NCBI GenBank assembly: GCA_964234715.1
Contig: OZ174275.1
From: Podarcis melisellensis
Taxonomy: Eukaryota
Strand: one strand, 5' to 3'
Length of the DNA stretch: 64,000 bases
The position numbers were made by a program, and so were the translations under genes. The notes below the pieces were generated by a model. That model was not told the origin of the DNA, did no database searches, and saw only the letters and a program-made list of their open reading frames with translations. Below, one piece after another: positions 2,488 through 64,000 of this stretch. Numbering within the stretch: the stretch's first letter is position 1; each line of letters opens with the position of its first letter.

Positions 2488-2537
<50 letters not shown>

Positions 2538-9734: not shown

Positions 9735-12700
9735 GCCCAGCATTCTCGGGAGGAAGCCATGAAACTGCTTTAAATCTCTAGTGCAGCTGAGGCCTTACTT
9801 TTTTGGTTCATCCAGGGGAGGCAGGCATTCCCTTGCCCCCCTACTCCAGATTCCTATGACTGGTCCAGCAACTGGTGGCCCTGTAACTACACCTGGCCAG
9901 CAGATGGTCACTGTTGGTTTGCAAGCCATACTATGGTTCTTCAGCAGTAAGCTACAAATAATATACAAACGATGGTACCGCACGGCACATAATCTAGTGC
10001 AACATATTCCCCTTTGCTGTCTTCACTGAGACTGTTCCCACAGCGGAGGCAGAAGAGGATGGGTATGGCTGACTTAGGCCTTAAAGCAAGATCCTGGGTA
10101 TGTTTAATCAGAAGGAAGCTCTGTTTGCTTCAGCCGGACATTTCCTAGAATATAAGGCAAGCGTGGTGTGGTTATTGGCATGTTCTTTGTACCAGGACAG
10201 TAGTCGGGTGCATTCCATTCCTGGCTGGCCCTTTCCTTTGGTAATTGTGGGCTTGTCCCTGCTACCGCTTGTGCTGTGCTTTCTAGGCACAGTTCCGAGA
10301 GGTTTTTTTCTTTTGCAGCACCACTTTCCCTGGGAAAACCTGTTGTTTACTGGTGGATCGCTGTTTACAAACCTGAACTGGGTTTTCTGCGAATTGGTGT
10401 TTGTTCCGATTCAGCAGTAAACAGTGGGTTTTCCTGGGGAAAGTGGCAGGATGAAAGAAAAACCCTTTGGAAACCCTTTGGACCCATGTCTAGAAAGCAG
10501 GAACAAGCAGAAGAAAACATGGGACAAGTGTGGGTGAGCCCCCTCTCCCTGTGTGTGTGTTCCATTCCCTGTCTCCTCTGCTTGCCTTGGGGTTCCTTTG
10601 CCCTCTGTTGTTTTGACTGTGGCAAGTTTGGACAGTCTCTCCAGTGCTTGATCTCAACTGGGGTAAGGAGTCCAGTTCTGTTGATGCAGTTATTCTTCCC
10701 CAGTGGCGGCAACGGTTGGCTGGCTGCCTCTCTTCCTTCTCTTTCTTCACTTCCTCCTCCTCCTCTTTATATTAAACATGCTTGTGCTGTTGTGCACTGA
10801 TAGGAAAAGAAAACACTATATTAAAAAGTGTGACAGAATGCGTCAAAGGAATTTTTAAAAATTATTTTAATTTCAGCATTTGCCTTTTAAAGCAATGGTG
10901 GGAGGAATCACACTGCAGGACCCATAGCTGCTTTGAGACCATTTGGCAGAAAGCTGGGATACAGATTTATCAAATAAATAAATAAAATAAAAGCGTAGCC
11001 TGGCACTCATGGAAGGCAGTGCAACCAGGAAATGTTGGTACATCTCCACCCACAATAGCTCCTCTTAGCTGCTGTAATAAAGCTTTGCCACTTCCTGATG
11101 GATAGGAAATGTACTGCATTTTTTTAAAAAAAGTGCTATGAACCAAAGAAGAATGGAAGAACAACAGGAGAAGTATTGGATTGCAACAGTTTGGCAGTGA
11201 TGTTGTTTCAATTCTTTGTAATATCAATGAATGAGTGAATGAATGATGCAAATTTGAAAGAAAAGGGGCTGGTGTGAAAGCAAGCTGTTATTTGCCTCCA
11301 CTAAGTTTAAAACTTGGACAGCACCGTGTATGTTCAATATGGAATAAAATAAATTATGCACCTAGACAATTCAGATTGTGTGCCAAGAAATACTGAATTC
11401 TACAACCTAAATAATTTATGGTTAGGCTTGTCCACCTTTGGGCATTTTTAGCTGTTTATCCACTTTCCCTCCATTCGGTTTAGACCAGAATAGACCACAT
11501 CTGCATGTATTTGAATTTGTATAGGAGGAACAGCTTCAGTCCTTATTGCTCATAAAAGGCATTCCTTTTAGTGTTTCCCTGCCCCAGAATTGTGCAAAAG
11601 CACACAGCCAGGGACTTGTAGATTTGCTTGTGCAGCATTTGGTTTTTGTGCAAATCTGATATATGGCTATGCTCCTTTCACGCCTTTCTGTTGAAAAAAA
11701 GAAATGAAAGCAATTGTACATTCTCAGCACCGACTTTTCAGATTGCTGCCCAGGATATCTGGTACAGAATTTTTTTAATGTGGTTTGCTTGTGCAGTTTT
11801 CTGTTTTTGTGCAAATCAGAGGGATTGGGGGGAAAAAAAGAACCTCTATTCAGGAGCATACCAGTTATGAAGTGAAAGCATTGAAGAAGTAGTAGACATG
11901 AAAAGGGGAGCAGCAGAAAGTGACAATTGATTCACCCACCCCAAAGCACCAAAACCCCAAGTAGTACAAGTGTGCATTACTTCTCTTTATTTTGCATAAT
12001 TTTCAGTCTCTACCCCCCCTTTTTTTTGCAGAATTTGATTTTGTTAATAATGAGGAGGAAGAAGCAGTTATGGAAGGTTCTGATGTCTCATGCCCACCCC
12101 CTAGAAATCTTATTCAGCCACCATTCCAGCAGGCACTGGTCACACATTTCTAAGAGCAGCTATGTAAAATGAAATCTGGGATTTCTTTAAAGAACTCTGA
12201 AGCCTGCACTCAGTATCACATTCTGTGCCTTTTCTGTTTGTCCTTGTGCCATGGGAGCATACACAGAGCATTGCTATGTAAGGGCTAATGCGCCTCCATG
12301 CATGGTACTAAGCTGGCCTTGCAAGTTGGGTTGGGAGCTCTCTTTCCCAGACAAAATTGGATGGCACTGGGAAGTGATTTTTATCAGGAGCTCAGGATCT
12401 CTACCAGTGTGCTGGGTTAGGGAGGCAGGGAGAACATGTGCTTGTGGAATTAAGGCATTCCCATGACATTCCATGTATGCATTTATTGTTCAGGAGTCCA
12501 CCATGCTCCCCGTCCCACATGGAATGTTTTATAGAAGGTACTTTGAAATGCACATAGTCTCCTTGCAGCGCTTTCGGTAACTGCTCTATGCTCACACAAC
12601 TTCAAAACCTTAGAGAGGAGCAAAAGCAATGCATCTGGCTTTGCTCTATCTTGGGCTTTTCTTTTTTAACATAAAACATTTTTTAAAGCCTCAAGGCAGT

Positions 12701-12776
12701 TTAAGCATGAAAAAAATAATCTCCCCCCTAGTCCCCCCCCTTCACTTCATCCTCAAGCTTGTGAGGATTTTGATCA

Positions 12777-13111
12777 CACAGAGCCTAGGGCTTGCCGATC
12801 AGAAGGTTGGTGGTCCGAATCCCCTCGACGGGGTGAGCTCCCGTTGCTTGGTCCCTGCTCCTGCCCACCTAACAGTTCGAAAGCACGTCAAAGTGCAAGT
12901 AGATAAATGAGTACCGCTCTGGCAGGAAGGTAAATGGCATTTCCGTGCGCTGCTCTGGTTTGCCAGAAGTGGCTTAGTCATGCTGGCCACATGACCCGGA
13001 AAAACTGTCTGCAGACAAACGCCAGCTCCCTCAGCCTGTAAAGCGAGATGAGCAACCCCAGAGTCGTCCGCGACTGGACCTAACGGTCAGGGGTCCCCTT
13101 ACCTTTACCTT
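12777..13111 (+). mobile_element. Sauria SINE (5'-truncated)
   Basis: Diagnostic segments 'gggcttgccgatcagaagg', 'gtgcaagtagataaat' and 'catgctggccacatgacccgg', plus an (ACCTTT)n tail. Confidence 0.9.
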
Positions 13112-13245
13112 TATCATCTGGGTGAAGTTTGTTATTACATTCTCCTAGCCTTTCGGCTAAGATGAGCTGGTGTTTTGTAGGGCTGGTCTGGGGGATGATG
13201 GTGGCTCTCAATATACTTTTGAACTCCTGTTTCCATTGAGCCCAT

Positions 13246-13430
13246 GTGGAAGAGATGCAACTCAGGGACAGACTGTTTGCCTAACTTGCAGAAGGTCCCA
13301 GGTTCATTCCCCCACATCTTTAGGTGGGATACTTATGCCTGAAATCCCAGAAAGCTGCTGCCAATCAGAACAGACGCTACTGAATTCGATGGACCCAGTG
13401 GGCCAAATCAGTATAAGACAGCGGTTTATA
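13246..13430 (+). mobile_element. tRNA-derived SINE (Squam2/Anolis SINE2-like), degenerate
   Basis: 'gcagaaggtcccaggttca..' B-box, 'agctgctgccaatcag' and tail 'cagtataagacagc'. Related to the copy at 48141-48306. Confidence 0.6.
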
Positions 13431-14261
13431 TCCCTAGCCAGTATTGCCAGGGGTTTGGGATGATGGGCTCTGAGGTTCAGCAACATCTGGAGGGCACCAG
13501 GTTGCCCACACCTCTTGTAGGAGATAGAAAGCTGGACTTGGACCAGAGATGGCAGTGGTTTGAATCCTTACCTGGCTGCAAAGCCTGCCCATGTCTGCAC
13601 AGCTAAGCAGTGGTGGCAGATTTCTAGTTAAAATATGTTCAGCTTCAACTCTCAACCACAGCTCTTATTAGAAGGGATAGGAGGCATAATAAAGTACTCA
13701 CCTTTCTGCTCATTTTATGATGTGAGTTGATTGGGAAGAGCTTGTTATCATGATGCCAACTAGAGCAGTCTTTGGAACAAGGGGCTTCTCCATGCTTGTG
13801 TTCAATGTGGATAGTAAGCTTCCCATAGCTCCTTTAAGCATCCATTGTCCATTTTACGTTCTCCTCCAAATCACTGCCTTTCCACGCTTTCCCCTCTGTC
13901 AATCTAGATTTTCTTACACCAGGGATATTCTGAAAAGGTGAGGGTATGAGGAAATCTGGATTGTGGGAGGGGGAAGTGTTGGAAGCAGTGATTTTGAGGG
14001 AGAATGTTATATGGACAGCAGAGAATGAATGGAGGCACAGGAAGCTTGCCATCCATATGAAGTAACAGCATGAATGAGTCCATAGTCTTCCTCTTTCACT
14101 TGTTGCTGGTCTTACCTGAGTGGAGACTGCTGGGGTTGGCTGCAGAGGGCAGTGAGCTCCACATTAGATGCGGATGCCAAAGAAGCCACAGTTCAAAAGC
14201 AGAGTGGGATGAGAGGCCCTTTGCTGAATCATGGTACAGTACAGTACTTTCAAATGTAACA

Positions 14262-14299
14262 TTCCTTGTGAATTGGTTTGTTCCTTGTGAATTGGTTTG
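14262..14299. repeat. Perfect 19-bp tandem duplication
   Basis: TTCCTTGTGAATTGGTTTG twice. Confidence 0.9.
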
Positions 14300-14786
14300 T
14301 CTTATTGGTTAGTTGAGCAGACTAGGACTTCAGTGGTTGGCCTGGAGCAATCCTACTTCCATGTCCTCAGTTCTTCTTCTGCAAAATAGGAACAAAATGG
14401 GCTCTTATGAGGAAATGGATTGTAAGGACTTTCCCAGCCTGAACAGCCAATATAATAAAATAATGACTTTGCTGCCTTGCTGTCCAGTGAGCTTTTGCAA
14501 CAAGCATTTGAACAAAGCAAAGCAAGGTGAGATGAGAAAATTAGGCCAAGAACGCTCATCCTTTTGTTTCCTAAGCTGGTTTTTTTTGGGACAGTGGGAG
14601 GAGGGAGGAACAATCCCCCCTTCTTTTCTTTTTCCTGGTCCTGTTCCAAATCCATACAACCGTAAAGTGATGCTGCCTCCTAAGGAGGGGAGCATAGCCT
14701 GTACATTTTCAACATTCTTGCTGGAGTTAACGACTTAGAAACATGACTCCCCAAAAGAGGGAGGGCTCGGCCCATTTGTGTGTGGG

Positions 14787-14811
14787 GTGTGTGTGTGTGT
14801 GTGTGTGTGTG
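14787..14811. repeat. (GT)n microsatellite
   Basis: Directly visible. Confidence 0.9.
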
Positions 14812-15354
14812 AAGTTTAGTCACGAAAGGAGGGGTGGAAATAGGAAAAAAATGCACAGCTCAGGGCAGCCTCTGACAGCGCAGTGGGCTGGCAGGCAGCT
14901 CCCAAACAATGTGCTTAGTATTATCCCCAGGACTGGAGCTGTCGGAGCGGGCTGGCGCGTACCTGTGCAGCCTGGGCTATCTTTGGCTAGGTGCCAGCGT
15001 GCCGAGAGGGTTACTTCCCCCTCCCTCTGCCTTCCCTCCCTCCTGCGTGTGGTGTGTAGCCTTTCTCCCCCTTCTCGCAGGAGTTGTTCAGAAAGCCTGG
15101 AAGCGGCTCCTTTTGTAGCACAGTCTAGGGTTGGGTGGAGTTTTTTTTTGGTGATTTCCCCTCCCTCTTTTTTTTTTTTTTTGGAGGGGGGGATTTGCTC
15201 ATCTGTTCCTTCTTGCCTTGCTTCGTTTTTTCCCTGGGTGAGGCCCCTTTTCTTCCCCAGTTTCTTGAATGTTTCGGTTTGAAACGTAAGATTTCTTGTT
15301 TTTCATTTCTCTCTTCTTCCACCCCTCCCCGCTCCTATTCTGTTTCCCGTACAG

Positions 15355-15392
15355 GTTGCAAGCTCTCCTGTCACAAGAAATGTGAAGCCAAG
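15355..15392 (+). CDS. TNS1: Tensin-1 internal coding exon, C-terminal half of the C1 (PKC-type zinc finger) domain
   Basis: Long polypyrimidine tract and acag acceptor (15351-15354). The 38-nt exon GTTGCAAGCTCTCCTGTCACAAGAAATGTGAAGCCAAG has phase 1 to 0 and encodes xCKLSCHKKCEAK, followed by donor AAG|gtaaga. Matches the tensin C1 motif C-x-x-S-C-H-[RK]-K-C-[EQ]-A-K. Confidence 0.9.
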
Positions 15393-16378: not shown

Positions 16379-16578
16379 NNNNNNNNNNNNNNNNNNNNNN
16401 NNNNNNNNNNNNNNNNNNNNNNNNNNNNNNNNNNNNNNNNNNNNNNNNNNNNNNNNNNNNNNNNNNNNNNNNNNNNNNNNNNNNNNNNNNNNNNNNNNNN
16501 NNNNNNNNNNNNNNNNNNNNNNNNNNNNNNNNNNNNNNNNNNNNNNNNNNNNNNNNNNNNNNNNNNNNNNNNNNNNNN
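16379..16578. other. Assembly gap (200 N)
   Basis: Run of exactly 200 N, probably a placeholder size. Confidence 0.99.
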
Positions 16579-45243: not shown

Positions 45244-47384
45244 TGTGTGAGCAAGGGGAAGGAAAGAGCTCCAGAAGATATGAGGATATCTGCTCAGATG
45301 CCCACAGGAGGGCGAGGCACTAAGGAGGGGGGAGGAGAGGAAAAAAACCAGGTCAAAGATTGACTCATCAAGCATTGAGCATCGCCTTTCCAGATGACCT
45401 GTTTATTGAGCACCTAATTTGCTTGCACAATGCCTGTCTGGATGTTAGATTATATCCAATCTTTATTGAGCATTCATTCTGATTTCCTAGTGGGGTGTTT
45501 ATACGTCTTCCTGTTATTCAGACACCCCAGACTTTTCGATGCATTTCCCCATAACTTTGTAAATGGCAAAAAAATCTGATTCTTTTTAAAAAGTGGATTC
45601 GTTGGGCTGGGGCAACAAAGCCCTTTAATCCAGTTTAACTGCAGAAACCTACAGTTCTAATATGTGCTTGTATTCCTCCTGCATAATAGTGACAGTTTGG
45701 AGGAACCACAGTCCTTTTTTGGAAACTGTGTACTGTGCCCTGCTTTGATACACTCCCCATCCCTGCTTTTGTGGTCCAAGAGAGGTAGCAGAATGAGGAG
45801 ATACATCGAGGTGCTGGTTGATTGCAGCTGGATAGGTTAGTCACTATTCAATGGCCTTCTCTGGCCAATGATGGGAGGGGAAGTGTAGTACCCATCCACC
45901 AGGTCTTCCAAAAAGGAAATGCACTGCTCTCTACAGTGGAAGATTTCAAACATCAGTCCATACATCATATAAATAATATAGAAGGTTCCCATTGCCAGCA
46001 GTCAGGTGAACACTTTGCATACTGAAGAAATCAATTCATGAAGAGTACAAGCACCATCTTTCAGTTCAGCCACACTTCTGTGCAAAAGCAGGGAAGGGGT
46101 GGGCACAGCTGAAGCAGCCTGAGCACAGGCAGGGAGAACTGTGGAAGAGCAGGCGACAAGGGAAGGACCTGTGGATATCCATTCATTTGGCGATTAGTGT
46201 CTTGGAAGGACACCGCTTGAGACCTTCTGGCTTTCTCCATCCCCAAGAGCTTATCCTGGTATGTCACCTCTCATTCTCTAAAGTATTCCGTGGTGGCCAG
46301 GCACTCTGCAGGGTCACAACATTGTTCAGGCTCCCCTTCCAAGCTTCCATCTTCGGCAAGCTCACACGGTCGAGTCCGGGAACGGCAGCAAATCCCTTCA
46401 GACTTAACTTGGTTTTAAAACGTTCCCTTCTCTTTCTTCTTTTGTTTGAGACATTTGGCGGCTCCAGCTTTTTAGAAGCAGCCATCTCCGAGACAAATGC
46501 CCCTAATGTGCAAGCCACAACTGGATCCAGATGTGCAATAAAGTTGCAGCGTAGGGATGGGAAGAGGGGGAGGCACCCGGAAAGCTTGACTCATCAAGGG
46601 CCGACTGTGTTTTGGGAGGTATAGGCTTCTGGCCAGGGAGGTGTGTGAGCGGGGGGATCATAATGCGTGCAATGCGACTCCCCTTGAGCTGATGGAAATT
46701 TTTAAAAAGGCTGAGAGTAGGATTAATCCCAGAAGTAAGGGAGGGACCAGTTCCTGTGCTGTCTTCCAAGGAACTGCCCTTAAAGGAACTGTCCAGCTGC
46801 CCAAATGTTTGGGCAGTTTAAAAGGAGCTCAGTGGAACCTTCCCGCTGCCTGGATTTTGTTGATGTTGCAATTGTACCTGGCGAATGCTAGCATCTGCCA
46901 TGAGTAAGTGAATGTAAAATGTCAGTTCCTCTGTGTCTCTCATGGGATTCTGCAAGGGGGGGGGGTAATCAGGAGAGAAAGGATGGGCTAATAGAAGGGC
47001 AGGGCTGTGGGTATTTCATACTTGCTTAATAGGCACTGTGGAGCCTGGTCCAGAAATTTCTCTTACAAACGTCGTTGGTCTCGATACTCCCACAGAATCA
47101 GAAGTAAAATGCAGCCTTTGTGCACAAGTCTGTCTATTCTGAGCACATCTTTCATCTCCCTGTTGGGCATTTTCCTGTCCAAAAACACCCCTCTCCAGCT
47201 GATTCCCTTCCATTCCACAGGGCTACAAATATAGGTGCGTACCCTTGTCAGCCAAGGTTGTGTGTGGTCCTCTAGGTGTTACTGGACTGTAACACCCATA
47301 ATCTCTAACCATTGACCATGGCTGGGCTGATGGGAGCTGGAGGGCCACAAGTCCCCCCCCCCCCCGCAACTGCTAGAATATTGA

Positions 47385-47598
47385 GGGTGGGTGGAGAAGC
47401 AGCTTGGGAGACCAGGGTTCAAATTCCCACTCAGCATGAAGCTCAAAGGGTGACCCTGGGCCAGCCACTGTCTCTCAGCCTGACCAACCTCACAGGGCTG
47501 TTGCGAGGATGAAATGAGAAGGAGATAATTTTGTTTGCTTCCTCAAGCTGCTTGGAAGAAAGATGGGAATAGAAATAGATAGAAATAAATAAATAAAT
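47385..47598 (+). mobile_element. CORE-type SINE (Squam3-like)
   Basis: B-box gggttcaaattcc, core 'tctctcagcctgaccaacctcacagggctgttg' and an (AAAT)n tail. Confidence 0.7.
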
Positions 47599-48140
47599 GT
47601 GGAATAAAAAAAGGGCTGGTGAAGTTTGCATGTAACATGTAAGTTTATGTCCTTGAGTCAGAGAAATGCAGTTTTTGTATTCCTCTTTTTCAGCCTTACA
47701 GCACAATTCTATGCATAGCTATTCAGAAAAGTTCCATTGGATTCAATGATAGTAAGTGAGTATAGGACTACAGCCTTAGACTTGGCCTTACTCTGCACAC
47801 ATTCTCAATTGCTGTTCTCCGCATTGTCAGGGAATAGCCAAAACCTTACCCAGTAATTACGGGTTAAGGCGGGGCGCATCATGGCCTGTCCCTCATCTTC
47901 TGTGTATGATCTGACATGGACAGCTAGGTAAACAAAACTGGGAAATGGTGAGTGTCTTGTCTAAACATTCCTTGAGCCTCCTTGTGCTGGTTGTAAAAGG
48001 ATTAATGGAAGCAGGGCTCTATGCTGAACACAATTTATGACACAGTATTCTGTGTGTGTAAGAGCAATTGCATTCTGTGGGACTTCAGAATTTTGGAAGT
48101 GACTGCTCTCTAGCATTCTATAGAAATTGATTTGTCTGGG

Positions 48141-48306
48141 GGAAGGGCAGGAGCTCAGTGGGAGAGAATCCGCTTTGCATGCAGAAGGTTCCCGGTTGAA
48201 ACTCTGGCTTGGGAAAATTCCTTGTTTGAAACTCTGGAGAGCTACTTCCAGCCATTGTAGACAATATTGAGTTGATGGACTAGCGGTCTGACTCTGTTCC
48301 TATGTT
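48141..48306 (+). mobile_element. tRNA-derived SINE (Squam2-like)
   Basis: A-box agctcagtgg, 'tttgcatgcagaagg..ggttgaaact' and tail 'gtctgactc..ttcctatgtt'. Confidence 0.65.
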
Positions 48307-49378
48307 ATCTGAGAACAGCTCACACTTGCAAAGATGTTGGGCTGTCTGGACTAATTATATGGGGTGTCTTTGGGTTGTCTACAGATGCAGCAGCCTGAAG
48401 CGGCCAGATCCTGAGATAGTAGTGCCACCCCAGAGTGTAAGTCTGGGAGTCCTTTATTTAAAAATGTTTCCCCATATTAAAATTCCTGTAGGAGAAAAAA
48501 TAGTTTATCAGGGATAAAAATTATAGCTCAACCCATTTCCTGCATTGTTGGTTTTCTTCTTGCAAGAAATCTTTAAGCACAGGTGGGCATTAACAAATGT
48601 GATCCTCCCACTTGCAGTCTAAAGTGGTCAGTGGAGGCTGACCCACTAGGGACAATGGAGCACTGCCTCACCAACCTCAGTCTGCCCTCAGCGACCCCCC
48701 CACCTGCCTGATTTCTTACCTACAATCATTCCAGAGCATGGCACTGGCTGTCAGCTCCTTCCTCCTTAGCCTCATGGTTGTCCTTGTAGAACTTGGAAGG
48801 TGGGAGGATGGGGTCAAAACTAGAATGAATTGGCTGTGGCGCCACCTACTGTTGGTCTCCTTGCCTTCTGCCCTACCACTCCCAAAGGGAGCAAGCCAAC
48901 ACTGAAAGCAGTGCAGTTGATTCTCTCACCTCAGAACTCTGCCCCCTCATGCCCACCTTAGTGAGCTGTGCTTGTGGGCCAGGCCAGCATGAGTTCTGTG
49001 GAGAGGTCATTTTTGAAGATGGAGCATGAGGTATAGCTTTCCTGAGAAAGTCCCCAGGACACCTCTGCTTAATTCTGCTCTCCATTAAGAATGGCATGGC
49101 AGACATGCCCCATTTCCAGCTGTGTGTCTGGACGGGCTGATAAGACTCAGACGGGCAGCCCGTTTGCATGAGGAATTTGCAATGTTTTATTTCACCCTCC
49201 CCTCCAAGAAACAATCCATTCTCTCCCCGCCCCTTGGACTCCCACTCTGATTCTTCATATGGGCTAGCTTATGAATGCCATGCCCTTTAAAGCCGAAGGA
49301 GGGAAAAAGAGCCCCGCACAGCTAGTGGTGTTGTTTTTGGGCGTGTGTGATGTTGTACTTGGACAGTGATGCATTGAC

Positions 49379-49402
49379 GGGTGGGGTGGGGGTGGGGGGG
49401 GG
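49379..49402 (+). promoter_or_regulatory. Potential G-quadruplex about 400 bp upstream of the alternative ATG
   Basis: GGG-T-GGGG-T-GGGGG-T-G9: four G-runs with 1-nt loops. Function not shown. Confidence 0.35.
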
Positions 49403-49801
49403 AAGAGAGGCTGTGCTAATAAGGTGGAGATTGGGAAGGAAAATCCCTTTCGAGTCTGAAAGCTTTTTCCTCTCTGCTTAATCACACTGCACACCCTGCT
49501 CTCCCAAGCTCACCACCCCAGAAAGCCCCAGACAAGCAGGTCTGCCTCCCCTTTCACCGATGTCTGAAATCAAGACCTTGGCTCCTCTCCATCTTCAACA
49601 GAATACTGTGTAACTTCTTCCTCCTCTCTGCCAGCTTTGACTAACAGCATCTGCACTGGCTAACTTTTGCACAAACAATTGCTGCTTCTTGCTTCACTAT
49701 GGCAGAAGGAGAAGCTCACTAAGGTGAGGCCAAGAGTTTCCTGTCCCTTGGATGTAGTAACCATCTTGGAGGTGCAATTTGAGATAGAACAGCGCAGCGA
49801 G

Positions 49802-49828
49802 ATGGATTTTGGAAGCGTAATGAACCAG
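49802..49828 (+). CDS. TNS1: Tensin-1 alternative first coding exon (MDFGSVMNQ)
   Basis: gagATGg (strong Kozak context). ATG GAT TTT GGA AGC GTA ATG AAC CAG|gtacta gives a phase-0 donor. The peptide matches the N-terminus of chicken tensin (MDFGSVMNQAATPC..., from memory). The 5' UTR start is unknown. Confidence 0.85.
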
Positions 49829-52644
49829 GTACTATTTATCTGTCTTTCCCGCCCCCCTCCCCTGATTTAAAAGGGAAGTTGGGAGAAGTGTCAGTGGGAA
49901 ATCAGAACTGCTTGCAAGTGAGTGAAGAAATGTATTTAGTTTAATCACAAAAATTTTAGGGGCTAGAAGTATACCGGGATTATAAAATGAGTTGCAAAAT
50001 GGTGACAGCTAAAAAAAACCAGCTGGGCATTTGGGGAAAGCATTAAACATCTGAAGAAAGTTAGGAATATGCTGTTGAAGGATTATGTGCTGTACCGTTC
50101 TTCTGTTCCCATAGTAATCTATTTTCAGTTCAGTGTGCTTCTGTGTTCTCTCCTTTTTATTGGGACAGGCGTATCTTTCCTTCGGTATGTAAAGGAGATG
50201 GTCTGTCATTCTGCACCCATAACCCTGCTAGCACCACTGTTAGCTGGCATAAAAGAATATACTGTAGCAGGCAGGTTTGATGGGACAGTTTTGGATTCAG
50301 CACTGTGAAAGTGAGAAGGAGAATGCAGAGCTGAAGGTGGGTGCCTGCACATAAACTCTGCCGCCTCCACCTGTTGGCTCATCAGCTTGGTAAGGACTAT
50401 GGGGCAAATAATTGGAAGGATTGGAAGGCGTTTGCAGGCAGCAATCAGAAGAAAGTGCCAAAATTAGATTTCAAAAGGGTGAAGTTATTTTATATCGGAA
50501 GGAGATGTGTAAAGCAAAATTCAGATTTGACCACTTTCCTAAATCCCCAGCATAGAGACATGTACACACATCACTTGCCAAGTCTGATTAACTTTACCAT
50601 CAGAGCAGAAGTGATCCTTGTCATTGATTGCTCATTATGCGCGATTGTGGAATTTTTTTTTGGTAGCATGCTCATATATTTAGTAAGTGTCAGTGGTAGA
50701 ATCAGTGTGTCACATGAACTGCAGGTAACATTAACTTTGATTTTTAGTAGCAATTGTAAGGAGCTAAAGTTGTCACAGCTGAAAGTCAGAGTCAGCAGCA
50801 GGTCCAGATTTTTACTGAAGAATTCCTCAAAGCACATGGATTCAAACTTGTTCATAATTTCAGCTCTGGTTTGTGTTCCTCGCTTTAAATCTTAACTGAA
50901 GCTCTTCATTAACTAAGCTGCAGGGATCCACTATCCAATATATATTTGCAATATTTTTGTAAAGCTCTCCCAATCCACCTTCTATCCAGAGAGCAGTAAC
51001 TCCAGCCTTTAACACCAATGTCTACACTCTGTGAGGGTTTTGTTAGGAAAGAGATGGGATAATTCTGACCGTTTTCCAGACTGGGGTGTCCGTGGCTGGC
51101 ACCGTCTCTTTCTGCCTTCGATGTCAGGTCCTGCAGTAATTGTTCTTCTGGTTAATGAATGCCCACATAGTTTGGTGGCATGAAATTCAAGAACCCAAGT
51201 TGCAGAAATCCAGAATTCTTCTCCATTTCCTCAGCATGGCAAGTATCCGTGCTGTACCCCAGATGCTCTGATTTTTCTTAGGAGACTTATCAAGAGAGGC
51301 TTGACAGTCCAAGAGAAAGCTAGGCTAACGCGATGGTATGTCTGGCTTGATTTCACACTCTGAGCAGAGCTTTCAGCACAGATGGATTTAGGCTTGGTCC
51401 GCGATCTGTTCTTTGAAAAAGGAAACAGCCTTCGCAAGCCTGGAAATGGATGCGTCATCCTACAAAAAAAGCAAAACAAAGGCCACTGTCGGAAGCTTCT
51501 CATGACCGGCCGGAGGCTACAGAAATCAACAAGCTCCAGGCAGTCTGTGCAGAGTACATGTTAGAGAGAGAAAAGCTTAGAGTAACTGCATGTTGTGACA
51601 TGAATCTTGGGCATATTGGAGAGCATTCTAGGTTGCAGGGGGAGGAATCCCTCACCCAACAGAGGTTAGCCAAGGGGTCATTTTTCTCAGGCAGAAGGAC
51701 TCACTAATACAGGCTGGTATGCAGGTATGTGGTGAGATGTTCAATGTTTATCCACTAAATCAACATCAGTGACTACAACCTCTGAGCCCAGGCACAATGA
51801 TAAACACAAGAGCACCAAACATTATGTGGAAAAAAGTTCAATTACAGTCAAACAATGGGCACATTTCAGAAAAGGGTAAGCACACTAAAATCCTTCTGAG
51901 ATAGATGGGCTTTTAAGTTCTGATCTGTGTGGTTTATTTTGCTTTAATGTCAAGCAACATGTCAAGCTTTGCTTGGCGTGATTCCTGTGCGTTCAGCAAC
52001 AGAGTTCAGTATACCACATCCTTCAACATTTGATTGACCTTTGCTTTGTATTATGGCCCCAATTCAGATTTAGTCAGGTCCTGGGTGGAGATGTGCACCC
52101 TCTGTTCTCAACCTTTGGGTCCCCAGATGTTGGGCTACAACTCCCATCATCCCTGAGCTCTGGCCTTGCTAGCTAGGGGTGATGGGAGTTGTAGTTCAAC
52201 AACATCTGGGGACCCATAGGTTGAGAAAGGCTGAATAAAGAGACAATTATGTATGGAATTTCTTTTGCAAGGTTTTATATTTTTGTTAAACTTATTTTTT
52301 TTTTAAAAAAACCTCTGCCTGCAGTGGCAGCAAGGTGAGGCAGATGGAGAAGGAAGTTGTGTTGGGGAGAGCCACGATAACAGTTCATGTCTGTGTTGAA
52401 AACAGGTGGCCAGTCCCCCTCTTGTGTGTCTCATTCTCAGATCACTAATTTTGTTAGATTTTTAGATTTGCTTCTCCAGTGAAGACAAATCTTCCATCAT
52501 ATTGTCCAAACAAGCACTGTTTGCAGGTGACTGGGTACCCACATTTAGGCAAAAACCACCCCCCCAAACCCATGCACGTTAGCTTACCAGTGCACATATA
52601 GTAATTGAGAAATGAAGCTATAGTTGAAAAGACAAGACCTGTGT

Positions 52645-53003
52645 AAGGTAAAGGTAAAGGAACCCTGGACGGTTAAGTCCAGTCAAAGGCAACTATGGGG
52701 TATGGTGCTCATTTCCCTTTTCAGGCCGAGGGAGCCAGTGTTTGTCCACAGCTTTCTGGGTCATGATTAAATCACTACTGGCACATGGAGGACCGTGACG
52801 ATTGCCAGAGCGCACAGAAACGCTGTTTACTGTTCCACTGCAGCGGTACCTATTTATCTATTTGCCTTGGTATGCTTTTGAAATGCTAGGTTGGCAGAAG
52901 CTGGGACAGAGCAATGGGAGCTCACCCCATCACTCAGATTCGAACTGCCGACCTTCCAATCAGCAAGCCCAAGAAACTCAGTGGTTTAGACCACAGTGCC
53001 ACC
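52645..53003 (-). mobile_element. Sauria SINE, near full length
   Basis: (AAAGGT)n tail on +, 'gcggtacctatttatcta', 'gggagctcacccc..gattcgaactgccgaccttc', and 5' end 'ggtttagaccacagtgccacc'. Confidence 0.9.
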
Positions 53004-53235
53004 AGACCTTTTCCCCAAATCATTGTAAATGTGTTCATGAAGCCAATCTTCCTGCATAGGAGGAATGCTGTGAGACAGCTATGTGGTTTTAACCCATGTT
53101 TGGACTTCACCGTATTTCTAGGGTGAGTTGAGGGGAGAAAGCTTCAGCAAAACACTTAACAAAGGGCTAGAGTTCTTTACAATAAATCTGCCTTGGCAAT
53201 TAATGCAGTGTGCTTGGGGCATTGTTTTGTGGAAG

Positions 53236-53610
53236 GGTGTAACATTAATGAGACTTCCTGGGGCTGGGTGAACTCTTTGGGAAGTGTGTTTATTTTCTGC
53301 TTGTTTGGACTGACTTCACTTGGCTATCCCTTTGGACCATCCCATGCTTCCCATTAGCTGCTCTAGCCACTGTTGTTTTCATTGTGTATTTCTCCAGCAC
53401 TGGGACTTCTGCACAAGCATAAAAAGGGCCATAAGTATTAGAAGGCACTCTACTCTCTTGAGATAGATGGTGAATAATTGGGATGGGGACAGAGCAGGGA
53501 TATCAGTTCCTAGAACTGCCGAGCAAGAAGGAATCTCTTTAATCCTCTGCCATCTGAAACCTGCTGGTGCAGGGGGTGAGTTCTTTAATTTCCCACTATG
53601 CCAGATCCAG
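53236..53610 (+). repeat. Diverged direct repeat, copy 1
   Basis: Aligns co-linearly, with indels, to 55938-56343. Confidence 0.9.
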
Positions 53611-53989
53611 GGTGGCAAAGCAGAGGACCCCGAGAATCAGCTCTTTAGGGGGATTTGGAGGACTGTGGATCAACCAGATCCAAATCCACTGGCACCCCTC
53701 TCCTGAAATACCTTGTATGGGGGATTTTTGATTACTATTCCTGGTGGGAGAATCATGAGTAGTGGTTTTCAGTCTGTGTGGGCGAAACTGGAGTCTCTGC
53801 TGTGGTGGAGCCCTCCATTCACCCACAGCAAATGATGGCACTCTTCTGCACTGATGGGGGCTATTTGGGGATGCAGTTACACACAGTCCTCTTCCTCCCA
53901 GCCATTAACAGCAGGGAGCAGGTTGGGTCTGCACTTTAAGCATTTTCACTATCATTTAAATGCATCTGTTAAAATGTAATCATGGGCAT

Positions 53990-54015
53990 GTATAACAGTG
54001 CAGTATAACAGTGCA
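53990..54015. repeat. 13-bp tandem duplication (GTATAACAGTGCA x2)
   Basis: Directly visible. Confidence 0.85.
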
Positions 54016-55493
54016 GAATCAGCATACTGAAACATTATTTGGTTTAATGAGACTATAAGCCCTTTCCGCATGTCCTCCTCCACCTCCTCCTTTATAAAAC
54101 TCCGGTGCATATAATGGAAGATAATAATTTCTAGTCCTTACAGAACTGTAGAAGAAAAAGAGTGAATAATTCCAACTGCTTGCACTGATGAAGGCTCTGA
54201 AGTCAAAGAGCTAAACATTGCAACTTCTTGCCCCCACCCCCTTGTGGTTCTAAGTCTCTCTCTTTGCTCCTGCCCCTCTTGGCCTTAGACATCCTTCTCA
54301 CTTTCTTTGCTACCTCTCCCCCAAGACATTGGCAATTTATTGTGCATAAATCCAAGGCCTGTGTTCAGATCAAACAGTAGCTTCAGTGAGGGACATATCC
54401 ATGTTTGCAGACATTGCTCAGTGTTGCATAAAGCCTGAATTGCACCTTATTAAAATGAAAAGCGGTTCCCCCTTATGCTATCCTCAGCATCTGCAGAAAA
54501 CAAGTGATCTCTGTTCTCTTTCACATAGTAGAAAACAATTACCTTATCTTACTTCTATATTCTTTACTTGAGCCTAAGCCTAATCAATTCCATCCTAGTT
54601 CCTGCTCAAAGCTGGAAAATATGAACTCTAAGACTGCTTTATTTTTTGGTCCCCTTGGTTCTTTTCCCACCAGGTGTAAACCATGCAACTGGCTGCTGTC
54701 TTCTACATGGGGGTGGCCTGGCATTTAAAGATGTTTGAGACAGGCCAGTGGTATTTGCCTCTGGAGACAGACCTCCTTTCCCAGGCCTGCTGGTTCTTGC
54801 AATATCTTAGTTGAGATCTAATAACAGCAAATTACTTTTGGTCTGAGGTTGAAGTGAGTTTTGCAGGCAGCGCTGTGCTTACATACTGCCAAGTGTAACT
54901 AAGCAGATGCCAATAACTAAGTAGTATCGGAGCCCGTAATGCCTCTCTGCCCACCCAGATGCACTCTGGGAAATCATACATAGATATCTATATCTGCAAA
55001 TAAGCTGTTTGTTTGCTAAATGTATGCATTTCCCTTTCAACATACAGTGTTTGTGCCTTCCAGCTCTTTTGCTGCTTCACACTCTAATCTCTATGTGTAT
55101 CCATAGGTTCTGTTTTTCTCTTGCTGGGAGTGTAAATGGATTCTCTCCCACTGTAGAGATGGCTTTCTCCCATCCTTTCTCTAAGGATGGCAATACATGG
55201 GGCTTTTCCCTATTTTACCACACAAAAACCCTTCAGGGAGGGTTAGGTTAAGAAATGGTGATTGGCTCAATATCACCTAGAGAGGTTCGTGGCTAGTTGT
55301 GGAGGTGAGCATGGGTCCCTCCAGATCAAGACCTACACTTTGGTCTAGTCAGTGCACCACACTGGCTCTTTTCAGCTCTCCAGTTGTGTACTTCAAACAC
55401 ACAAATAGCCAGGACTCACCACATGGAGACTTGTGGAAATGTTGCTGTGTGGCAGCATCACACTCCTTTTGGCAGCTGACACTGGCAAGGAAA

Positions 55494-55840
55494 CAGGGAC
55501 GCGGACTTATAAAAAATATTGGGGGGGCCCGGGAAAGCTCATGAATAATAAATAAGCTCATGAATATGCAAATAAAGTGGCGCCGCCTCCTCGTGAGCGA
55601 ATAGGGGAGAGCGTGCTGCGCCTATTAATCAGCTCCAAAGGAAATTGGGTGGAGCTTTTGCTCGGGAGGGAGGGCAGGAGGCATGCAGCCCGCCCCTCCC
55701 TGTGCATTTTGGGCTGGGGGAGGGGCGGCGATGGCGCTCTGCTGGAGGGGCGCCGGAGATTATTGGGGGGGCGGAGCCCCCCCAAACGAATTTTTGAGGG
55801 GGCTCGGGCCCCCTCAAGCCCCATGGAGTTGGCGCCTATG
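55494..55840. mobile_element. Young GC/CpG-rich non-autonomous hAT element
   Basis: Perfect 8-bp TSD CAAGGAAA at 55486-55493 and 55841-55848. Imperfect TIRs CAGGGACGCGGACT / CATAGGCGCCAACT. Many retained CpGs. Confidence 0.85.
55557..55573 (+). promoter_or_regulatory. Heptamer-octamer (POU/Oct) motif CTCATGAATATGCAAAT inside the hAT element
   Basis: Exact motif present; activity unknown. Confidence 0.5.
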
Positions 55841-55937
55841 CAAGGAAACTCTCATGGTTTGGGCAATCCATGTGGTGCGTGACCCTTGCATTTTTCAGCC
55901 ATTACCTGGCACCTTCATTTTCAACAAAAGCTGTCTC

Positions 55938-56343
55938 GGTGTAACATTTCTAATTGTGGAAGACACACTGAGACTTCTTGGTACTGGATGAACTCTTTGG
56001 GAAGTGTTTTTTATTATTTCCTGCTTGTTTGGATACACTTCACTTGGCTATCCCTGGGTCATCCCATTCTTCCCGTTAGCTGCTCCAGACACTCTTGTCT
56101 GCATTGTGCCTCTCCAGTGTGTTGTTGAATAATTTTGTTGACCTGTCAATACTGGGACTTCTGCATAAGCATAAAAAAGGCTATAGGTATACCTCTCTTG
56201 AGGCAGATGTGGTAAATAATTGGGATGGGGACAGAGCAGGGATATCAGTTCCTAGAGCTGCCGAGTAAGAAGGAATCCTCTGCCATCTCAAACTTGCTGG
56301 GGTAGTAGATGAGTTCTTTAATTTTCCACTATGCCAGGTCCAG
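55938..56343 (+). repeat. Diverged direct repeat, copy 2
   Basis: Shares a 42-bp identical block with copy 1 (53473-53514 = 56215-56256). Confidence 0.9.
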
Positions 56344-57360
56344 ACTGTGTTGCAGAAGTGGGGGTTATTGGGGCTTCAAGGTGCCTAGCATGTGAAGCCT
56401 CTCGCATGACACAGTGTTTGTGAACACTTTTGAACATGTGCATCAGGCCTGGTGCCATGGAGGGGAACTATATTAATATGATCAGGGATGTGTACATGCA
56501 TTCCATTAGCCTGGCCCTGTCTGGGAGTGCACTGTTTGTTTGTTTTTGCACACCCAGGGTGAGAACCAGATGGCTAACAGGCACGCTGGTTGGCACTACT
56601 GAGACTGCTTGGCAAGGCTGTGCTGAGTCATTGGACGGCGTTTGGGTGGATTGACCATGACTCCCTGCCTGGGTTTCCATTAGGCTGTATAGATCCAAGA
56701 AATCGTCCCAGGCTAGAAAGGGAGGAGGAGACCATGGGCGTACACTGCCGCTGAGCTGTTGGGTCTGGCATCATCAGAAAGTTGGCTACAAGCTCCTGCT
56801 TTCTTGGATGGGGTTCTTGGCAACATTTCTGTTTGTTGCAAAAGCAGCACTTCCTGGTGGAATTTTATTTTTTAAATCGTAGCATGGACATGCTTGGTTG
56901 TTACATATGTTTTGTGAATGCCAGCACCAAGGAGTTCCAGGAACAAAGTTGGGAGTCCAGTGTGCTGATAGCTGTTGGTTCAAACATTTGAAAGCAGATC
57001 ACAGCTCACTCACTGAAGGACTCCCAGCATTACGAAAGTGCTGGAGGATATAAAGGACAATTGGAGGAAGCACAATATTATTCTTCTGATTTATGCAGTG
57101 CTATCAGTGTACATGGTTTGGTGCATCATGAACACAAAAGACAGGTCTCTGCCCCAAGAAGCTTTCAATGGAGAAGAAAGCAGAGGGAAGGAAGGAGAGA
57201 AAGCCAAGGGTAACAAGTTATGGCTTGGTGACAGCAAAGGAAGGGCTTAAGCAATGGTGTGAAGGAGAAGTGTGCTGTAGGCAATGTGACTAATTTGCAT
57301 TATACTTGGGATTATTGACAAGCACTCACTGGGGGTCAGGGTGCCAGTCCCTGGAAAATT

Positions 57361-57790
57361 CCATGAGGGTAGCCATGTCTGGAGTAATGTTAGGGCCAGC
57401 TGATTTATTGTTATGTGAATTTCCATTGGCAGCTACATACTTGTTTATCAGATGCATTTAGTGGGGTGGGAATGTGGCAGGTAGGTGTATGCAACACATG
57501 GCTGGAGGCGTTTGTAGATCAGCTCCGTAACATGGGAACTCAAGATGTCTGGAAAAAGCACCCTGGTGGAGGCTGCTCAAGGTGAATGCAGTAGATTAGC
57601 TTAACATTTGTTGAAACAATGTAGCATGAATGCTAAACATGAATGCGCTAAAACAGCCAGCTGGGAAGCAGCTATTTTTGTTCAAGCCTAAGGCCAGAGA
57701 CAGGAGACTCTTGTTCATCTGAAAAGTAACAGATAAAACCTAGTGGAAGGGTAAATGACAGGTCAAAGGCATCAAACTTTGCACTGGCCT
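57361..57790 (-). mobile_element. Degenerate Penelope-like fragment
   Basis: 'gagggtagccatgt..gatttattg..atcagatgcat' resembles the terminus at 29374. Confidence 0.45.
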
Positions 57791-60700
57791 TTTCCTCACC
57801 GCTGTGGCCAAATCTAGTCTGGGATTTGGCTCTGAGTGTGTGTGACAGGTAAAACCTGTCTTTGCTGCAGACATAAGTAGGATTCCCTCAGGCTGTGTGC
57901 TGGCCTGGAATAAGTGGATGAAGTCAATTTGGGCTTCCCACCCTCATCCTGAGGAAGACCTTGGTTACTGGGGGTCAATGCCTCAGCTTGGAAAATAGGA
58001 TGAAGGCCAGGAAGTGAAACCCATAAGGTAAGGCAGGTGTTTGTAGATTAGACCCCCCACCACCCTCAGATGTCAGCTGGGAGCTGCTGCCAGGGGAAAA
58101 AAAAATCAAAGCTGGTAAATCATTTATCTAGATAGGCAGACATAGCAAACTCTAGATGAGTTTAGCTGGGAGAGTTGGCGCAAAGGGAATTTGATTAGCA
58201 TACTAAGCAGGCAGAAATCTACAGGTGACTTTGTCTTCTCTCTCACATTTTCTTCAAAAAGTAAAAACTCATGGGTGCACATGTGCATTTTGGAATTAGT
58301 TTGCCAGGTAGAGAGCTTCCCATAACCCCCACCTTGTAGCTGCTTTTTAGAGCATTACCTGCTTTCTTATCATGTGTACCAGTTAGTATTCACAGCTAGC
58401 TGACTGTTAAAAAATAACCTTTTGGGTGAGAGGGACATTAACTGCTTTGCTAGCATATGTTGAGATTTGAAATTCTGGAAAAAGGTGCAATTTGGATTTA
58501 GCTTTCTATTGACCTCTGGAAAACACACAGTCTTCTGATCTGTTGAAATATAAGTGTGTACATACCATAGTTCTTAGCAGCCTTTCAAAAAAAGTCTATA
58601 AAAGTAATGAGTGTATCAAAATATTTACTAGACCACTTGTCCACATGTACTGTACCCATATTAGTAACTGTACTTTGTTAAGGCTTGCTGGGAATTATAA
58701 CTTGGTGGGGGGTACACTATAGTGCCCAGAATTCTTTGGGTGAAAGAATATAGTGTTCATGTAGCTAGGTTTACTTGAAGGGAACAACTACAGTTGCTGT
58801 TAAAAGTTGATGTCACTGTGTCTGCCTGGGAAATCACTTGAAGGGGCAGGAAATGAATGTAGGAGAGAAGCTGTTCTCTCCCCCACCCCCGCCCTCCCTA
58901 TGTAAATATTTATGTGAACTGCCCCAGGTTTTATGGCTAGGTCAGCTTTTAAGCCTAAATATGTGTATAAATGTCAGTAAGTCCATTTGGATTTTGCATA
59001 AATAAGCATATGTGTGCAAAGGCAGGCAAGTGTGCTCCCATGCAAGTCATGCTCAGACCCCCTTGTTCCTAAATGTGAAGGAAAAGGCAGATCCACATGA
59101 AAAATCTGAAGCTCATTTAAAGCACACGACTTCCCCAGAGCATCCTGGGAACTGTAGTTAGTTCAGGGTACTGGGAATTGTAGTTATTGTGTGTGTGTGG
59201 GGGGGGAGAACTGCAGCTGCCAGGATTCTTTTGGAGTGCCATGTGCGTAAACATAGGATTATGTGGGGCAGGGTTTTGTGGAGGAGTGGATTCAGGCAAA
59301 AAGTCAGGGCGGAACAGCAGGTTTGGGGTCAGGAGATCTTCTGCCGACTTCGAAGCTGGTGGTTTCCAGCCAATTTTCAGCGTCACCCTCTATGAGTCCC
59401 AAAGAGGAGTTTTGTAAACTTTGCCTTTTTAGGCTTGGGAGCCAACAGCAGCAAACAGAAAGGCCCAGCTGCAAATGAAAATCCTCTCCTTGTGCAAACA
59501 ACAGTAAGTAGGAAGCTGCCACTTGCCGTGTCTCGCTCAAAAGGGCACAACAATGAAGGTTTTTAGGAAGTATTCAAGAGGTTTGTTATCCTGGCCCCCA
59601 TTCTACAAGCGCCAAACAGGCAAAAGCCCTGGCAGCTGTTGGTCAGGATTTATAGCTCTTGGTTTGTTTTTAGAGGCTGGAGAAGGAGGGGTGGTTCTGA
59701 CAATAGCGGCACCTCCTGACGCAGGTGAGGTTGCTTCCAGGTCACCTGTTTATTATTGAGCATTCAACCTGATTTGTTTGCAGGGTGATTAGACGAAGTT
59801 AGCTATTTATTGAATATTCATTCTAATTTGTTTATAGGGAGGTCAAGTGATGCTGCATCAAACAAATGCATTTTATTGTCACCTTCCAATTTTGCAAAGT
59901 GTCCAATCTTTTAGAGAAGTGTCAGAGTTTCAGCTATAAGTGCATAGCCTGAATTTGCCAGTATGTGTTTGAACCCTACCTGAATATATAGTGACAGTTT
60001 GGAAGTGCCCTCCTATATTTTTTCCTACATGAGCAAGTAATTTTGAGGAAGGGTTTTTCCCCATTGGTAATGCAGGCTATGTACACATTAGCCACCTTCC
60101 ACTGTGTTTCAAGTTGCAATTGCACACTGTTGTACACACCAGAGGTTCATTCAATGCACATTACTTGTTTGGTATTGGTATTATATATATATTTATACCC
60201 CACCTTTTCCCCTCAAGACTCAAAGCTTTCTCTGCCCCTGCAAACCCCCAAACTCCTGTCCATGAAGCTGTCACCTGTACATGTTCTGTCATCCATGTAT
60301 GCACAATGGCTGTCTAAAATGTAGACACCTCAGCTTAACTGTGCAGTGAATGTGGCTCAAGTTTTCGTGTGTGTGTGTGCGCGCGTGTGTGTGCCATGGA
60401 CTTGAACCAAATCCCTTCTCCTATTTTTTTTTGGTAAACATTCGAAAGGATGGGAGAACAAATCACAGATCTTCATAATCTCATCTGAATCAACAGAGTC
60501 CTGGCCGTGGTGATGAGGGAAAAGTAGATCTGAATGAAGAGTTCTGCTGCATTGTGGGCAGAATTGTCAGCCAGGCAGAATTTCTCATCCTGGTAATAAA
60601 GATGTGAGCCAGAAAGACCCTTTGCTTAACCTTAGATCCAGGAGGGCGGACTAGTAAGTGAGGCTGCCCTGGCAGATTAGTAAGAATAAAAATGCAAGAA

Positions 60701-61184
60701 GGGAAGGAAAAAATGGAGACATTTTTGCTTTTCCTTGTAATCTCTTCAAATCTGATCTGGAACAAACACCAGGCTATAAATATGCAACTTCCTGATGCCA
60801 TTTGTAATGGTATTTCTTAAGTTCAGATTACAGTGTTTCAAGCCCTACTGATATTTTATCAGTCATCCTGGCTTTTAAATAAATAAAGCCGCAGCTGACC
60901 AGAAGGGAGTTGAGATTCCATAGCAGGACAAGTTAGAGCCAGATAGGAACTGAATACTTGGGAAAGAAGGTGGGAGAGATCAGATAGAAGTATGATCAAG
61001 TATGATCGCAGATGCCAGTGGCATCATTGAGCTTGCTTGTATTTCTTAAATAAGGCATAAGGAATGCAGTGGATTTACAGTTCCACAATACAATGCAATC
61101 AGCTATAACTCTTAGCTGATTGCATTATTGACCTGCAGCTGGTGGGTCATGGAAATAATGAAGAGAGTCCAGGTCATAGGTGCT

Positions 61185-61185
61185 T

Positions 61186-61231
<46 letters not shown>

Positions 61232-61232
61232 G
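61185..61232. repeat. Compound (TG)n(AG)n microsatellite
   Basis: Directly visible. Confidence 0.95.
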
Positions 61233-64000
61233 CGCGTTCTAGATGAGTTAATGGATTTGGCAGTTGCATCTACCTGGCATTGATCTACCTCTCACAAATT
61301 TGCCTTGCTTGTTCTTCCTTTTTTCATTGGGTATTTCTTGTTGAAATATATGGTCAAAAATCGGGTGCAATAAAAAACCAAAGAAAGGGGATGGAAATGG
61401 ATTGGGGTGGGAAGTAGTAAGCCCTGGAGGTCAAGGTTTAGACGCCAAGGTGAGGAACAAGAGAGCTGTTCCAGGAACAGAACATCCCACTCCTTTGTCA
61501 CCAGAAGCCCATTCCATGGCTCATTTTGATTTCATAGCCTTTGCATAGTTTCAGACTTTCTTGCAACATTATAAAAGCTAGAAAATTCCCTTTTTTGGGG
61601 AAAAAATGTAGATGGGAAGATTCCTAGGGAGTAGGATTCTGGTTTGGAATGCATGTTCTGTGCTTCATAGCACCTATGGAAGCAAGAGGAATACGCACAA
61701 TCCAGCCTTTTACTAATACTTCTTGCTCCCTGAAGGCATTCATCTCCACATTAAAGTCGTCACTTCAGAGTCTCTCAGTAAAGCTTACTTTCTTGTAGTA
61801 GCTGAAGGGTCCCTTGTACCAAGGATCCCTTTCATGGAGGGCGCTGGTTAAGGCCTCTTGAACCTCACATCGCCATGGATAAGAAATGGTAGGCAAATAG
61901 CCTTTGTTCACATTGAAAGCGTGCAACTTCCCCTCAAGAATCTTGGGAACTGTAGTTTGTTAAGAGTCCTGGGAATTGTATCTCTGCCAAAGGGAAACTA
62001 CAGTCCCATAGACTCTTTGTGGGAAGTGCATTAAAGTGTATGGTGTGGACGTGACCTTTCTCAGGGAAGCACAGTTACCATGGTTGATCCGATAATCTTC
62101 CAAGGACCCTCAGGCTTCCTGGGACCTCAGTCAGAATTCTTTGAAATCCACATGGCTCCATCAATCTTTGCAACTCTGGTTGCTTCCCCTCTGGAGCCCT
62201 TTGTTGCTGCAGAGGCAAGGCCTTTCCAGAATTAGCTGGAAGTGCAATTAAAAACAGTGCTTCCATGGAGTGCTTAATTAATTCAGTACTAATTTAACTA
62301 GCCATTCCCCTCTCCATGTATACGATCCTCCTGTAATATCTACTCACAAGTAAGCTCCAGTCAGTAAAGGTTCTTTCCAATGACAATTGAAAGATTCCTG
62401 TTTGCAGGTTCAGCTGTTTTATTGCTACCCTGGTCATTGTGGCATGGGGTCTAGTGCTGAATTGCCCCCTTTTGTCACCTGTCTTCTAGATTTGTATACA
62501 TTCCCTTGATTTGTATACAACTCTTCTTCTTCTTCAAAATAAATAAATAAATAAAAATAAAAAATTGCCGCAGACCTCCCCCCCCCCCCACTGGCATGTA
62601 ATGATTTAATAATGGCATTGTATGAATTCCTCATTTTTAAAAAGTGATTGAACAAAAGATGGAAACCAGAGAAAGGGCAAATGTGGAAGCAATGTCTGGC
62701 CTTTTCTTAATAGTGATTGTGGCTGAAATGAAAAATAGTTTCTTTTTTTCTGTTGGTTTTCAGGTAAAGTCGTTTGTTCTCAATTAGAATAAAATGTTAG
62801 GGCTTGCATTCCACTGCCAAAATTCTTGATAAGTTCTGTCTCTAGGCTAATAATAATTTTTTGTGGTTACTCCTTATCTCTTTTTTAAAACACACAAGAA
62901 TCAGGTCATCCCTTCTTCTGTATTTGCTGGGCACCACATTGTGGGCTTATCACAGTGTGCAGAAAACTAATGATCTTGTACTGCAGCTGGGGAGTCTCAT
63001 GGTCCTGTGATGGTCCTGAGATTTCGATCTGCTGTTGCATGCTCCAGTTGCCTACACACACTATTTTTTATCTTTCATTTGAGCATGCAGATAGTTCAAC
63101 CTTGTGACTATGACTAATATTGCTGGCTGAAAACACAGCTAGGTTGTTCTGGTTGGTGAGAAAATGCATCAAAATGCATGTTTTCATAAGAAATGACAGG
63201 ATAGATAAGGATTACAATATGGATTGCAACTAAGGTTGTGCGTATACTGCTTCCCAAACCAGAAGTGGGAGCGCACTGCATATGCAGAGTAAATGGGAGT
63301 GTGTACACAGCCTAGATGTGCTGTGTTAACTCTGATCAGCATGGCTTCTCTCCCACAGGTGCAAAGAGCTTGTGTTTAAATGCAAAGACCAGAAGCTCTG
63401 TAACCAAAGAAGCAAAGGTTTCTGTAGCCAAACTGCTGCTCACATTGCATTAAACATCATCCTCCATGTCTCCCCACTAAGGTCTAAGTTCAGATGAGCC
63501 CACTCACTTTCCTTCAGCAGAAACGTATTCCCCACCAGCACGTAGGAACCTAACCTGGAAAGAATCCAGCTTCCAGAGGTCACAATCAGGTCAAGTTGAA
63601 TCTAAATATGTTTGAGTACTGTATGGCTACCACCAAAATAAAGCTGCTGAGCATGTCTGGCAAGGGCAGACCCAGGTTTTCGGCAGATGCTCTCTGTGTG
63701 GGCGAGTGTCCTCAGGCAACTTTAAGTTAATAAAGCATTCAGTAGACAGTGCTTAATCTCTTGGTCTGAAGCATGGGAGAGTGCTGCTGTGTTCATATTT
63801 TGCTTATGGGCTTCCTGGCAGCATCTTGGTGAAAACACTGGACTTTGGTTCAATCCAGCAGAGGTGGTCTTATGTTCTTAACGTACAAAGCAGGCAAAAT
63901 TGCCTTTCTGCTTGGACCAACTTAGGTTGTTGGAGCCGCATGCAAGCTTCCAGATGTTCTCCGAACTCTTCAGTGGGCAGAATGCAATTGGATAAACATT

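Follow-up and report, generated by a model that had tools for sequence, protein, structure and literature searches.

Does the large intron behind the C1-encoding region of a lizard tensin gene contain a second coding start, such that the choice of start decides whether the protein begins with a C1 zinc finger? The question is raised by nine codons at 49802-49828 of the stretch of DNA considered here, which we call the window and which encompasses 64,000 nucleotides from Podarcis melisellensis (assembly GCA_964234715.1, contig OZ174275.1). A first-pass annotation, made from the letters alone, had interpreted these codons as an alternative first exon of TNS1 that bypasses the C1 domain. That interpretation is largely right: 49802-49828 is a real exon, and it is spliced at the predicted site. 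It is also likely that the exon acts as an alternative 5' coding exon, spliced in such a way that the choice of start either includes or bypasses C1. Within this reading, we infer the shared acceptor, the exon's own promoter, the exclusion of C1 and the identity with the N-terminus of chicken tensin.

The first landmark is the upstream exon that probably belongs to the C1 domain:

15355-15392, plus strand: predicted 38-nt exon encoding (G)CKLSCHKKCEAK, with an acceptor in phase 1 and a donor in phase 0, taken as the C-terminal tail of a C1 zinc finger.

This exon reads ag/GT TGC AAG CTC TCC TGT CAC AAG AAA TGT GAA GCC AAG/gtaaga, the slashes marking the splice boundaries, and both of its splice signals are strong (acceptor ttctgtttcccgtacag/, donor AAG/gtaaga). 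The full C1 motif (PF00130) is H-x12-C-x2-C-x(n)-C-x2-C-x4-H-x2-C-x(n)-C, and only its final C-x4-H-x2-C is encoded at 15355-15392; it is by this spacing only that the exon is predicted to be a C1 tail. Pfam and PDB searches with the 20-residue C1-tail piece, which is too short for the purpose, returned nothing meaningful, and a search of 1-15354 did not reveal the finger's first half. The C1-tail exon lies 34,410 nt upstream of the ATG at 49802, so that both the distance of about 34 kb and the phase-0 donor described in the first-pass annotation are borne out by the sequence. The gene is most likely TNS1. The end of the preceding intron (15333-15354) reads YSVSRT in frame with the C1-tail exon and resembles MSVSRT, the start of human tensin-1; since it lies upstream of the acceptor, the likeness is regarded as a coincidence. 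A run of 200 N is found at 16379-16578, about 1 kb downstream of the C1-tail exon.

The exon under study and its donor are as follows:

49802-49828, plus strand: coding part of the likely alternative 5' exon, an ATG and eight further codons (MDFGSVMNQ; sequence ATGGATTTTGGAAGCGTAATGAACCAG).
49829-49834, plus strand: splice donor GTACTA, phase 0, marked by contig ends and by a drop in depth.

The nine codons, 27 nt in all, are ATG GAT TTT GGA AGC GTA ATG AAC CAG, and the window sequence places the ATG, the codons and the phase-0 GT donor exactly where they had been reported. The start context is indeed strong, with G at both -3 (49799) and +4 (49805) relative to the ATG at 49802-49804. The donor, CAG/GTACTA, agrees with the consensus in its exonic letters and from +1 to +3, and departs from it at +4 to +6. 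When MDFGSVMNQ is back-translated into a degenerate pattern followed by GT, it has a single match in the window; none of 100 dinucleotide shuffles gave a match, not even when three mismatches were tolerated. An ATG, a short reading frame and a GT are by themselves trivial by chance. What goes beyond chance is the RNA evidence, together with the likely identity of the nine residues to the N-terminus of a known protein. Chicken tensin (UniProt Q04205) very likely begins MDFGSVMNQAATPC, with the same nine residues MDFGSVMNQ. The exon looks like the ortholog of the one that encodes this long-known N-terminus rather than a new kind of feature.

The nine codons are embedded in a longer frame:

49667-49870, plus strand: 67-aa open reading frame with a TTG start, enclosing the exon; spurious, with its frame broken in organism F and in L001 (see below).

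The closest upstream in-frame stop to ATG 49802 is at 49661, and there is no in-frame ATG between the two. In what we call organism F, a 2-nt insertion (CA) follows 49792, so that the frame is shifted nine bases ahead of the ATG. The 67-aa frame is thus not conserved as coding in its upstream part, which argues that ATG 49802 is the start and that the enclosing frame is spurious. The downstream part of the frame is altered in L001, a genomic-type, unspliced Logan contig of a close relative, by a 20-nt deletion at 49847-49866. The insertion and the deletion together agree with the earlier judgement that the 67-aa frame is spurious. The tract that is absent from L001 (at L001:430-450) is C-rich and lies 18 bases past the donor, which implies that the intron just after the donor tolerates indels. 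Upstream of the start, the leader from 49209 onwards contains nine ATGs, and every reading frame that they open ends before 49802. Only one of the nine, at 49699 (seven codons), has a good context, and the context of ATG 49802 is the best within the leader.

Evidence for transcription comes from assembled and raw sequencing runs. In a run search with 49560-49860, no matching run is recorded as RNA, and the records of X2 and X14 (see below) give RNA as a guess only. Five studies and six organisms are represented by fourteen transcriptome-sized contig sets (39-148 Mb), which contain 0.39-0.89 of the words sampled from this segment; in DNA-sized sets (1.3-1.5 Gb) the share is 0.96-1.00. Nine of the transcriptome-sized sets contain 0.89 (about 23/26 words), and this is the share expected of an exon without the last 32, intronic, bases of the segment. 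Four runs were then aligned to 46900-52800: X2 (organism B), X14 (organism F) and the raw bulk RNA runs X23 and X24. Record 10 of X2, a contig of 445 nt at depth 34.6, is identical to the window over 49518-49829 and continues with 109 unlike letters, and a contig from X14 (record 4; 638 nt, depth 123) fits 49209-49829 and continues with 27 unlike letters. Contigs of two organisms hence both diverge from the genome exactly at the donor. As the fit extends to 49829, the next exon should begin with G. Read depth behaves in the same way, with 25-30 in the exon bins of X2 and 107-148 in those of X14, and with 0 and 5-7, respectively, in the bins past the donor. The divergence of two RNA-like contigs from two organisms, together with the drop in depth, answers the question of whether the 49828 donor is used in RNA: the 49802 exon is expressed and its donor is used. 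It had also been supposed that annotation could easily miss an exon of this kind; as the exon has RNA support, that is doubtful. The raw runs X23 and X24 contribute 1-2 reads only over 49461-49854, too few for tables of junctions or starts. All of these reads have the first mate on the minus strand, which in the usual stranded libraries corresponds to RNA of the plus strand.

The run records do not say RNA, and L001 has indels just downstream of the donor; both facts would accommodate contigs that are DNA or assembly artefacts, with the break at 49829 a structural difference between genomes. This explanation is scarcely credible. Two organisms break at one base, right at CAG/GT, and the unspliced L001 passes straight through the site. 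The X2 and X14 contig sets are 144-148 Mb in size, as against the 1.3-1.5 Gb of the DNA sets. Moreover, the adjacent intron acts as a silent control that is wholly absent from X2, where its depth is zero, and this argues that the X2 and X14 sets are RNA.

The exon, then, is transcribed and spliced at its 3' end; whether it is also the first exon depends on what lies upstream of the ATG. Two features are relevant here:

49209-49801, plus strand: 5' leader, at least this long in organism F, where a contig is collinear over 49209-49829.
49518-49521, plus strand: possible alternative acceptor, uncertain; ccag after a C-rich tract, at the point where the organism B contig begins to fit.

In organism F, no fewer than 593 nt of leader ahead of the ATG follow the genome without a break, and no acceptor is seen among them, which fits a first exon. 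The organism B contig has 24 unmatched letters 5' of 49518, and at 49509-49525 the genome reads like an acceptor (...ctcaccaccccag/aaag), so a non-coding exon farther upstream may be where some transcripts begin. More generally, the exon could carry the start codon and yet not be first, with entry through an acceptor near 49521 from one or more upstream non-coding exons. Under that arrangement the promoter would lie outside this segment of the intron, and the arrangement may coexist with a first exon at 49802. The state of the putative promoter region would be in keeping with it: CpG observed/expected is 0.18-0.26, so the region is not a CpG island, there is no clear TATA box in the leader or promoter region, the elements seen near 49117-49227 are limited to a GATA site, an E-box and a GC box, and no pile-up of start sites is seen in the raw runs, which have 1-2 reads here. 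On the other hand, the organism F contig runs collinearly through 49518 to 49209 with no joint, and the 24 letters of organism B could stem from an assembly tip or from a stretch in which the organisms differ. Nor do they agree with the end of the C1-tail exon: a junction with that exon would have placed the start of the alignment at 49520. Entry through the acceptor near 49521 is accordingly a minority possibility, and we regard it as rather unlikely. The earlier proposal of an alternative first exon that skips C1 is partly supported, by the exon itself, the use of its donor, the collinear leader and the phase-0 donors of both exons; its claim that the exon is the first is where the 24 unmatched letters leave it qualified. 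A G-rich tract, ggtggggtgggggtggggggggg, lies within the leader at 49380-49403, and organism F is without 12 bases of it at 49383.

Comparison with L001 and organism F indicates that the exon changes more slowly than its surroundings. Against L001, there are 0/409 substitutions over 49420-49828, the exon up to its donor, versus 17/571 substitutions and 24 gap letters in the aligned intron (Fisher's test against the exon, p = 1.8e-4). In organism F, the exon piece carries 12/621 substitutions as compared to 59/1362 in two intron pieces (p = 0.006), and eight of these 12 cluster in 49723-49794. The 27 coding bases do not differ from the window in either organism F or L001; the 0 substitutions in organism F are weak evidence when taken alone, with P about 0.04 to 0.3 according to the rate assumed. 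It is mainly the leader around 49400-49720 that is constrained, and this may reflect a promoter-proximal or UTR regulatory element. That part of the leader shows 0 differences from L001 and only two substitutions in organism F; the 70 bases next to the ATG are less well conserved.

Interspersed repeats occupy 47294-47687, 48082-48278, 48476-49066, 52022-52415 and 52613-52800. Their summed depth in the RNA sets reaches 42,000, with many joints and loose ends, and they are probably abundant SINE or other transposon families. Far upstream, 9237-9296 on the plus strand gives a tRNA-like Rfam match (RF00005, 37.4 bits) and probably belongs to a tRNA-derived SINE rather than being a tRNA gene.

An expressed and spliced exon is not necessarily a coding one. 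The transcript could be non-coding or unrelated to the tensin gene, or the exon could be a frame-breaking exon of the C1 isoform, the nine codons in neither case being the start of a protein. The leader bears nine upstream ATGs, the partner exon is unseen within the window, and the peptide text search and the word search gave no protein evidence: a literature text search with the string MDFGSVMNQ found no match, and the word search with the 67-aa frame, among proteins of 37-117 aa, gave only P0001, an unspliced Logan reading frame, and no spliced fragment. Exact look-ups of three leader frames for spliced contigs also found no match. Two metagenome scans with the back-translated peptide gave 0 matches, to which we attach no weight as vertebrate DNA is rare in that collection. 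Nevertheless, the 49802 exon lies on the same strand as the C1-tail exon and has a donor of matching phase, the ATG at 49802 has the best context in the leader with all upstream frames ending before it, and the nine residues are very likely those with which chicken tensin begins, encoded by a pattern that is unique in the window. As for a frame-breaking exon, a frame that passed from the C1 exon into 49522 would run into a stop after some 40 codons at most. We consider a non-coding or frame-breaking role for the exon highly improbable.

The preferred reading, an alternative 5' coding exon, leads to the following picture. The exon would be part of the same gene as the C1-tail exon, most likely TNS1. 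The RNA would begin near 49209 or farther upstream, within the large intron after the C1 exon, at a promoter that lacks a CpG island. The resulting leader would be long and bear several short upstream reading frames, with main-frame translation predicted to begin at ATG 49802. After nine codons, a phase-0 splice at 49828/49829 would lead to a downstream exon starting with G. As both donors are in phase 0, the C1-tail exon and the 49802 exon can join the same acceptor in frame, and the choice of start would then set the N-terminus as either the C1 finger or the nine residues MDFGSVMNQ. Motif and regular-expression scans of 49830-64000, in the three plus-strand frames, did not find the downstream exon or its acceptor, nor any AATPC-like exon, and the downstream exon probably lies beyond the window.

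Both the N-terminus and the use of alternative starts have precedents. Lo et al. are said to have reported a chicken tensin cDNA in 1994. The N-terminus of chicken tensin very likely has the same nine residues as the lizard exon and is without a C1 domain. A 6.3-kb chicken cDNA with an open reading frame of 1,792 aa has been described (Chuang, Lin & Lin 1995, PMC2120419). Mouse Tns1 appears in a 2006 list of loci with well-supported, mutually exclusive first exons (Genome Biol, PMC1431701, Table 4). In that list the alternative given for mouse Tns1 begins in a later intron ('5>') with no sequence tabulated, and it may differ from the lizard exon (PMC1431701).

In human erythroid cells, eTNS1 is produced from an intronic TNS1 promoter, and its exon 1E encodes nine unique residues (PMC11702514). 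An intronic alternative promoter, a first exon of nine residues and the loss of N-terminal domains (PMC11702514) are also what is proposed for the lizard exon. However, exon 1E is located in intron 17, originates from a LINE, probably exists in primates only and takes away the entire PTP-C2 region (PMC11702514), whereas the lizard exon has a position far upstream, shows conservation among lizards and would cost the protein just the C1 finger. Alternative first exons of TNS1 have thus been on record for mouse since 2006 and for human as eTNS1; the chicken cDNA goes back to 1994-95. The lizard exon would encode the counterpart of an N-terminus described long ago, in a gene for which such exons have been reported, and is a feature of a known kind.

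The mouse reference Tns1 protein (1,918 aa) contains a C1 finger, which would make outdated the statement that this domain is confined to TNS2. Recent reviews do call C1 unique to TNS2 (PMC12383349), and for this reason a C1 switch in TNS1 is little discussed. TNS2 (C1-TEN) itself has variants with and without C1 that reportedly behave differently, and a C1-Tensin 3 isoform is also mentioned (PMC10315744). The principle of including or omitting C1 is the same in TNS2 as that proposed for the lizard TNS1, but TNS2 is a paralogous gene.

For lizard genomics, the exon represents an annotation detail. Tensin biology gains nothing from it that the chicken cDNA and the mammalian isoform catalogues had not already suggested. 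It does illustrate that a 27-base coding exon hidden in a spurious reading frame can be confirmed from public RNA assemblies. TNS1 seems to have both a C1-encoding 5' region and a start that bypasses C1, an arrangement overlooked by recent tensin reviews. A more speculative and doubtful suggestion is that the nine-residue Met-Asp N-terminus has been kept unchanged across sauropsids, and perhaps amniotes, because it has a separate role, for example as an acetylated signal for targeting or stability, while promoter choice toggles a C1 membrane- or lipid-binding module on TNS1. If that were true, the two forms of TNS1 would differ in their localisation or signalling.
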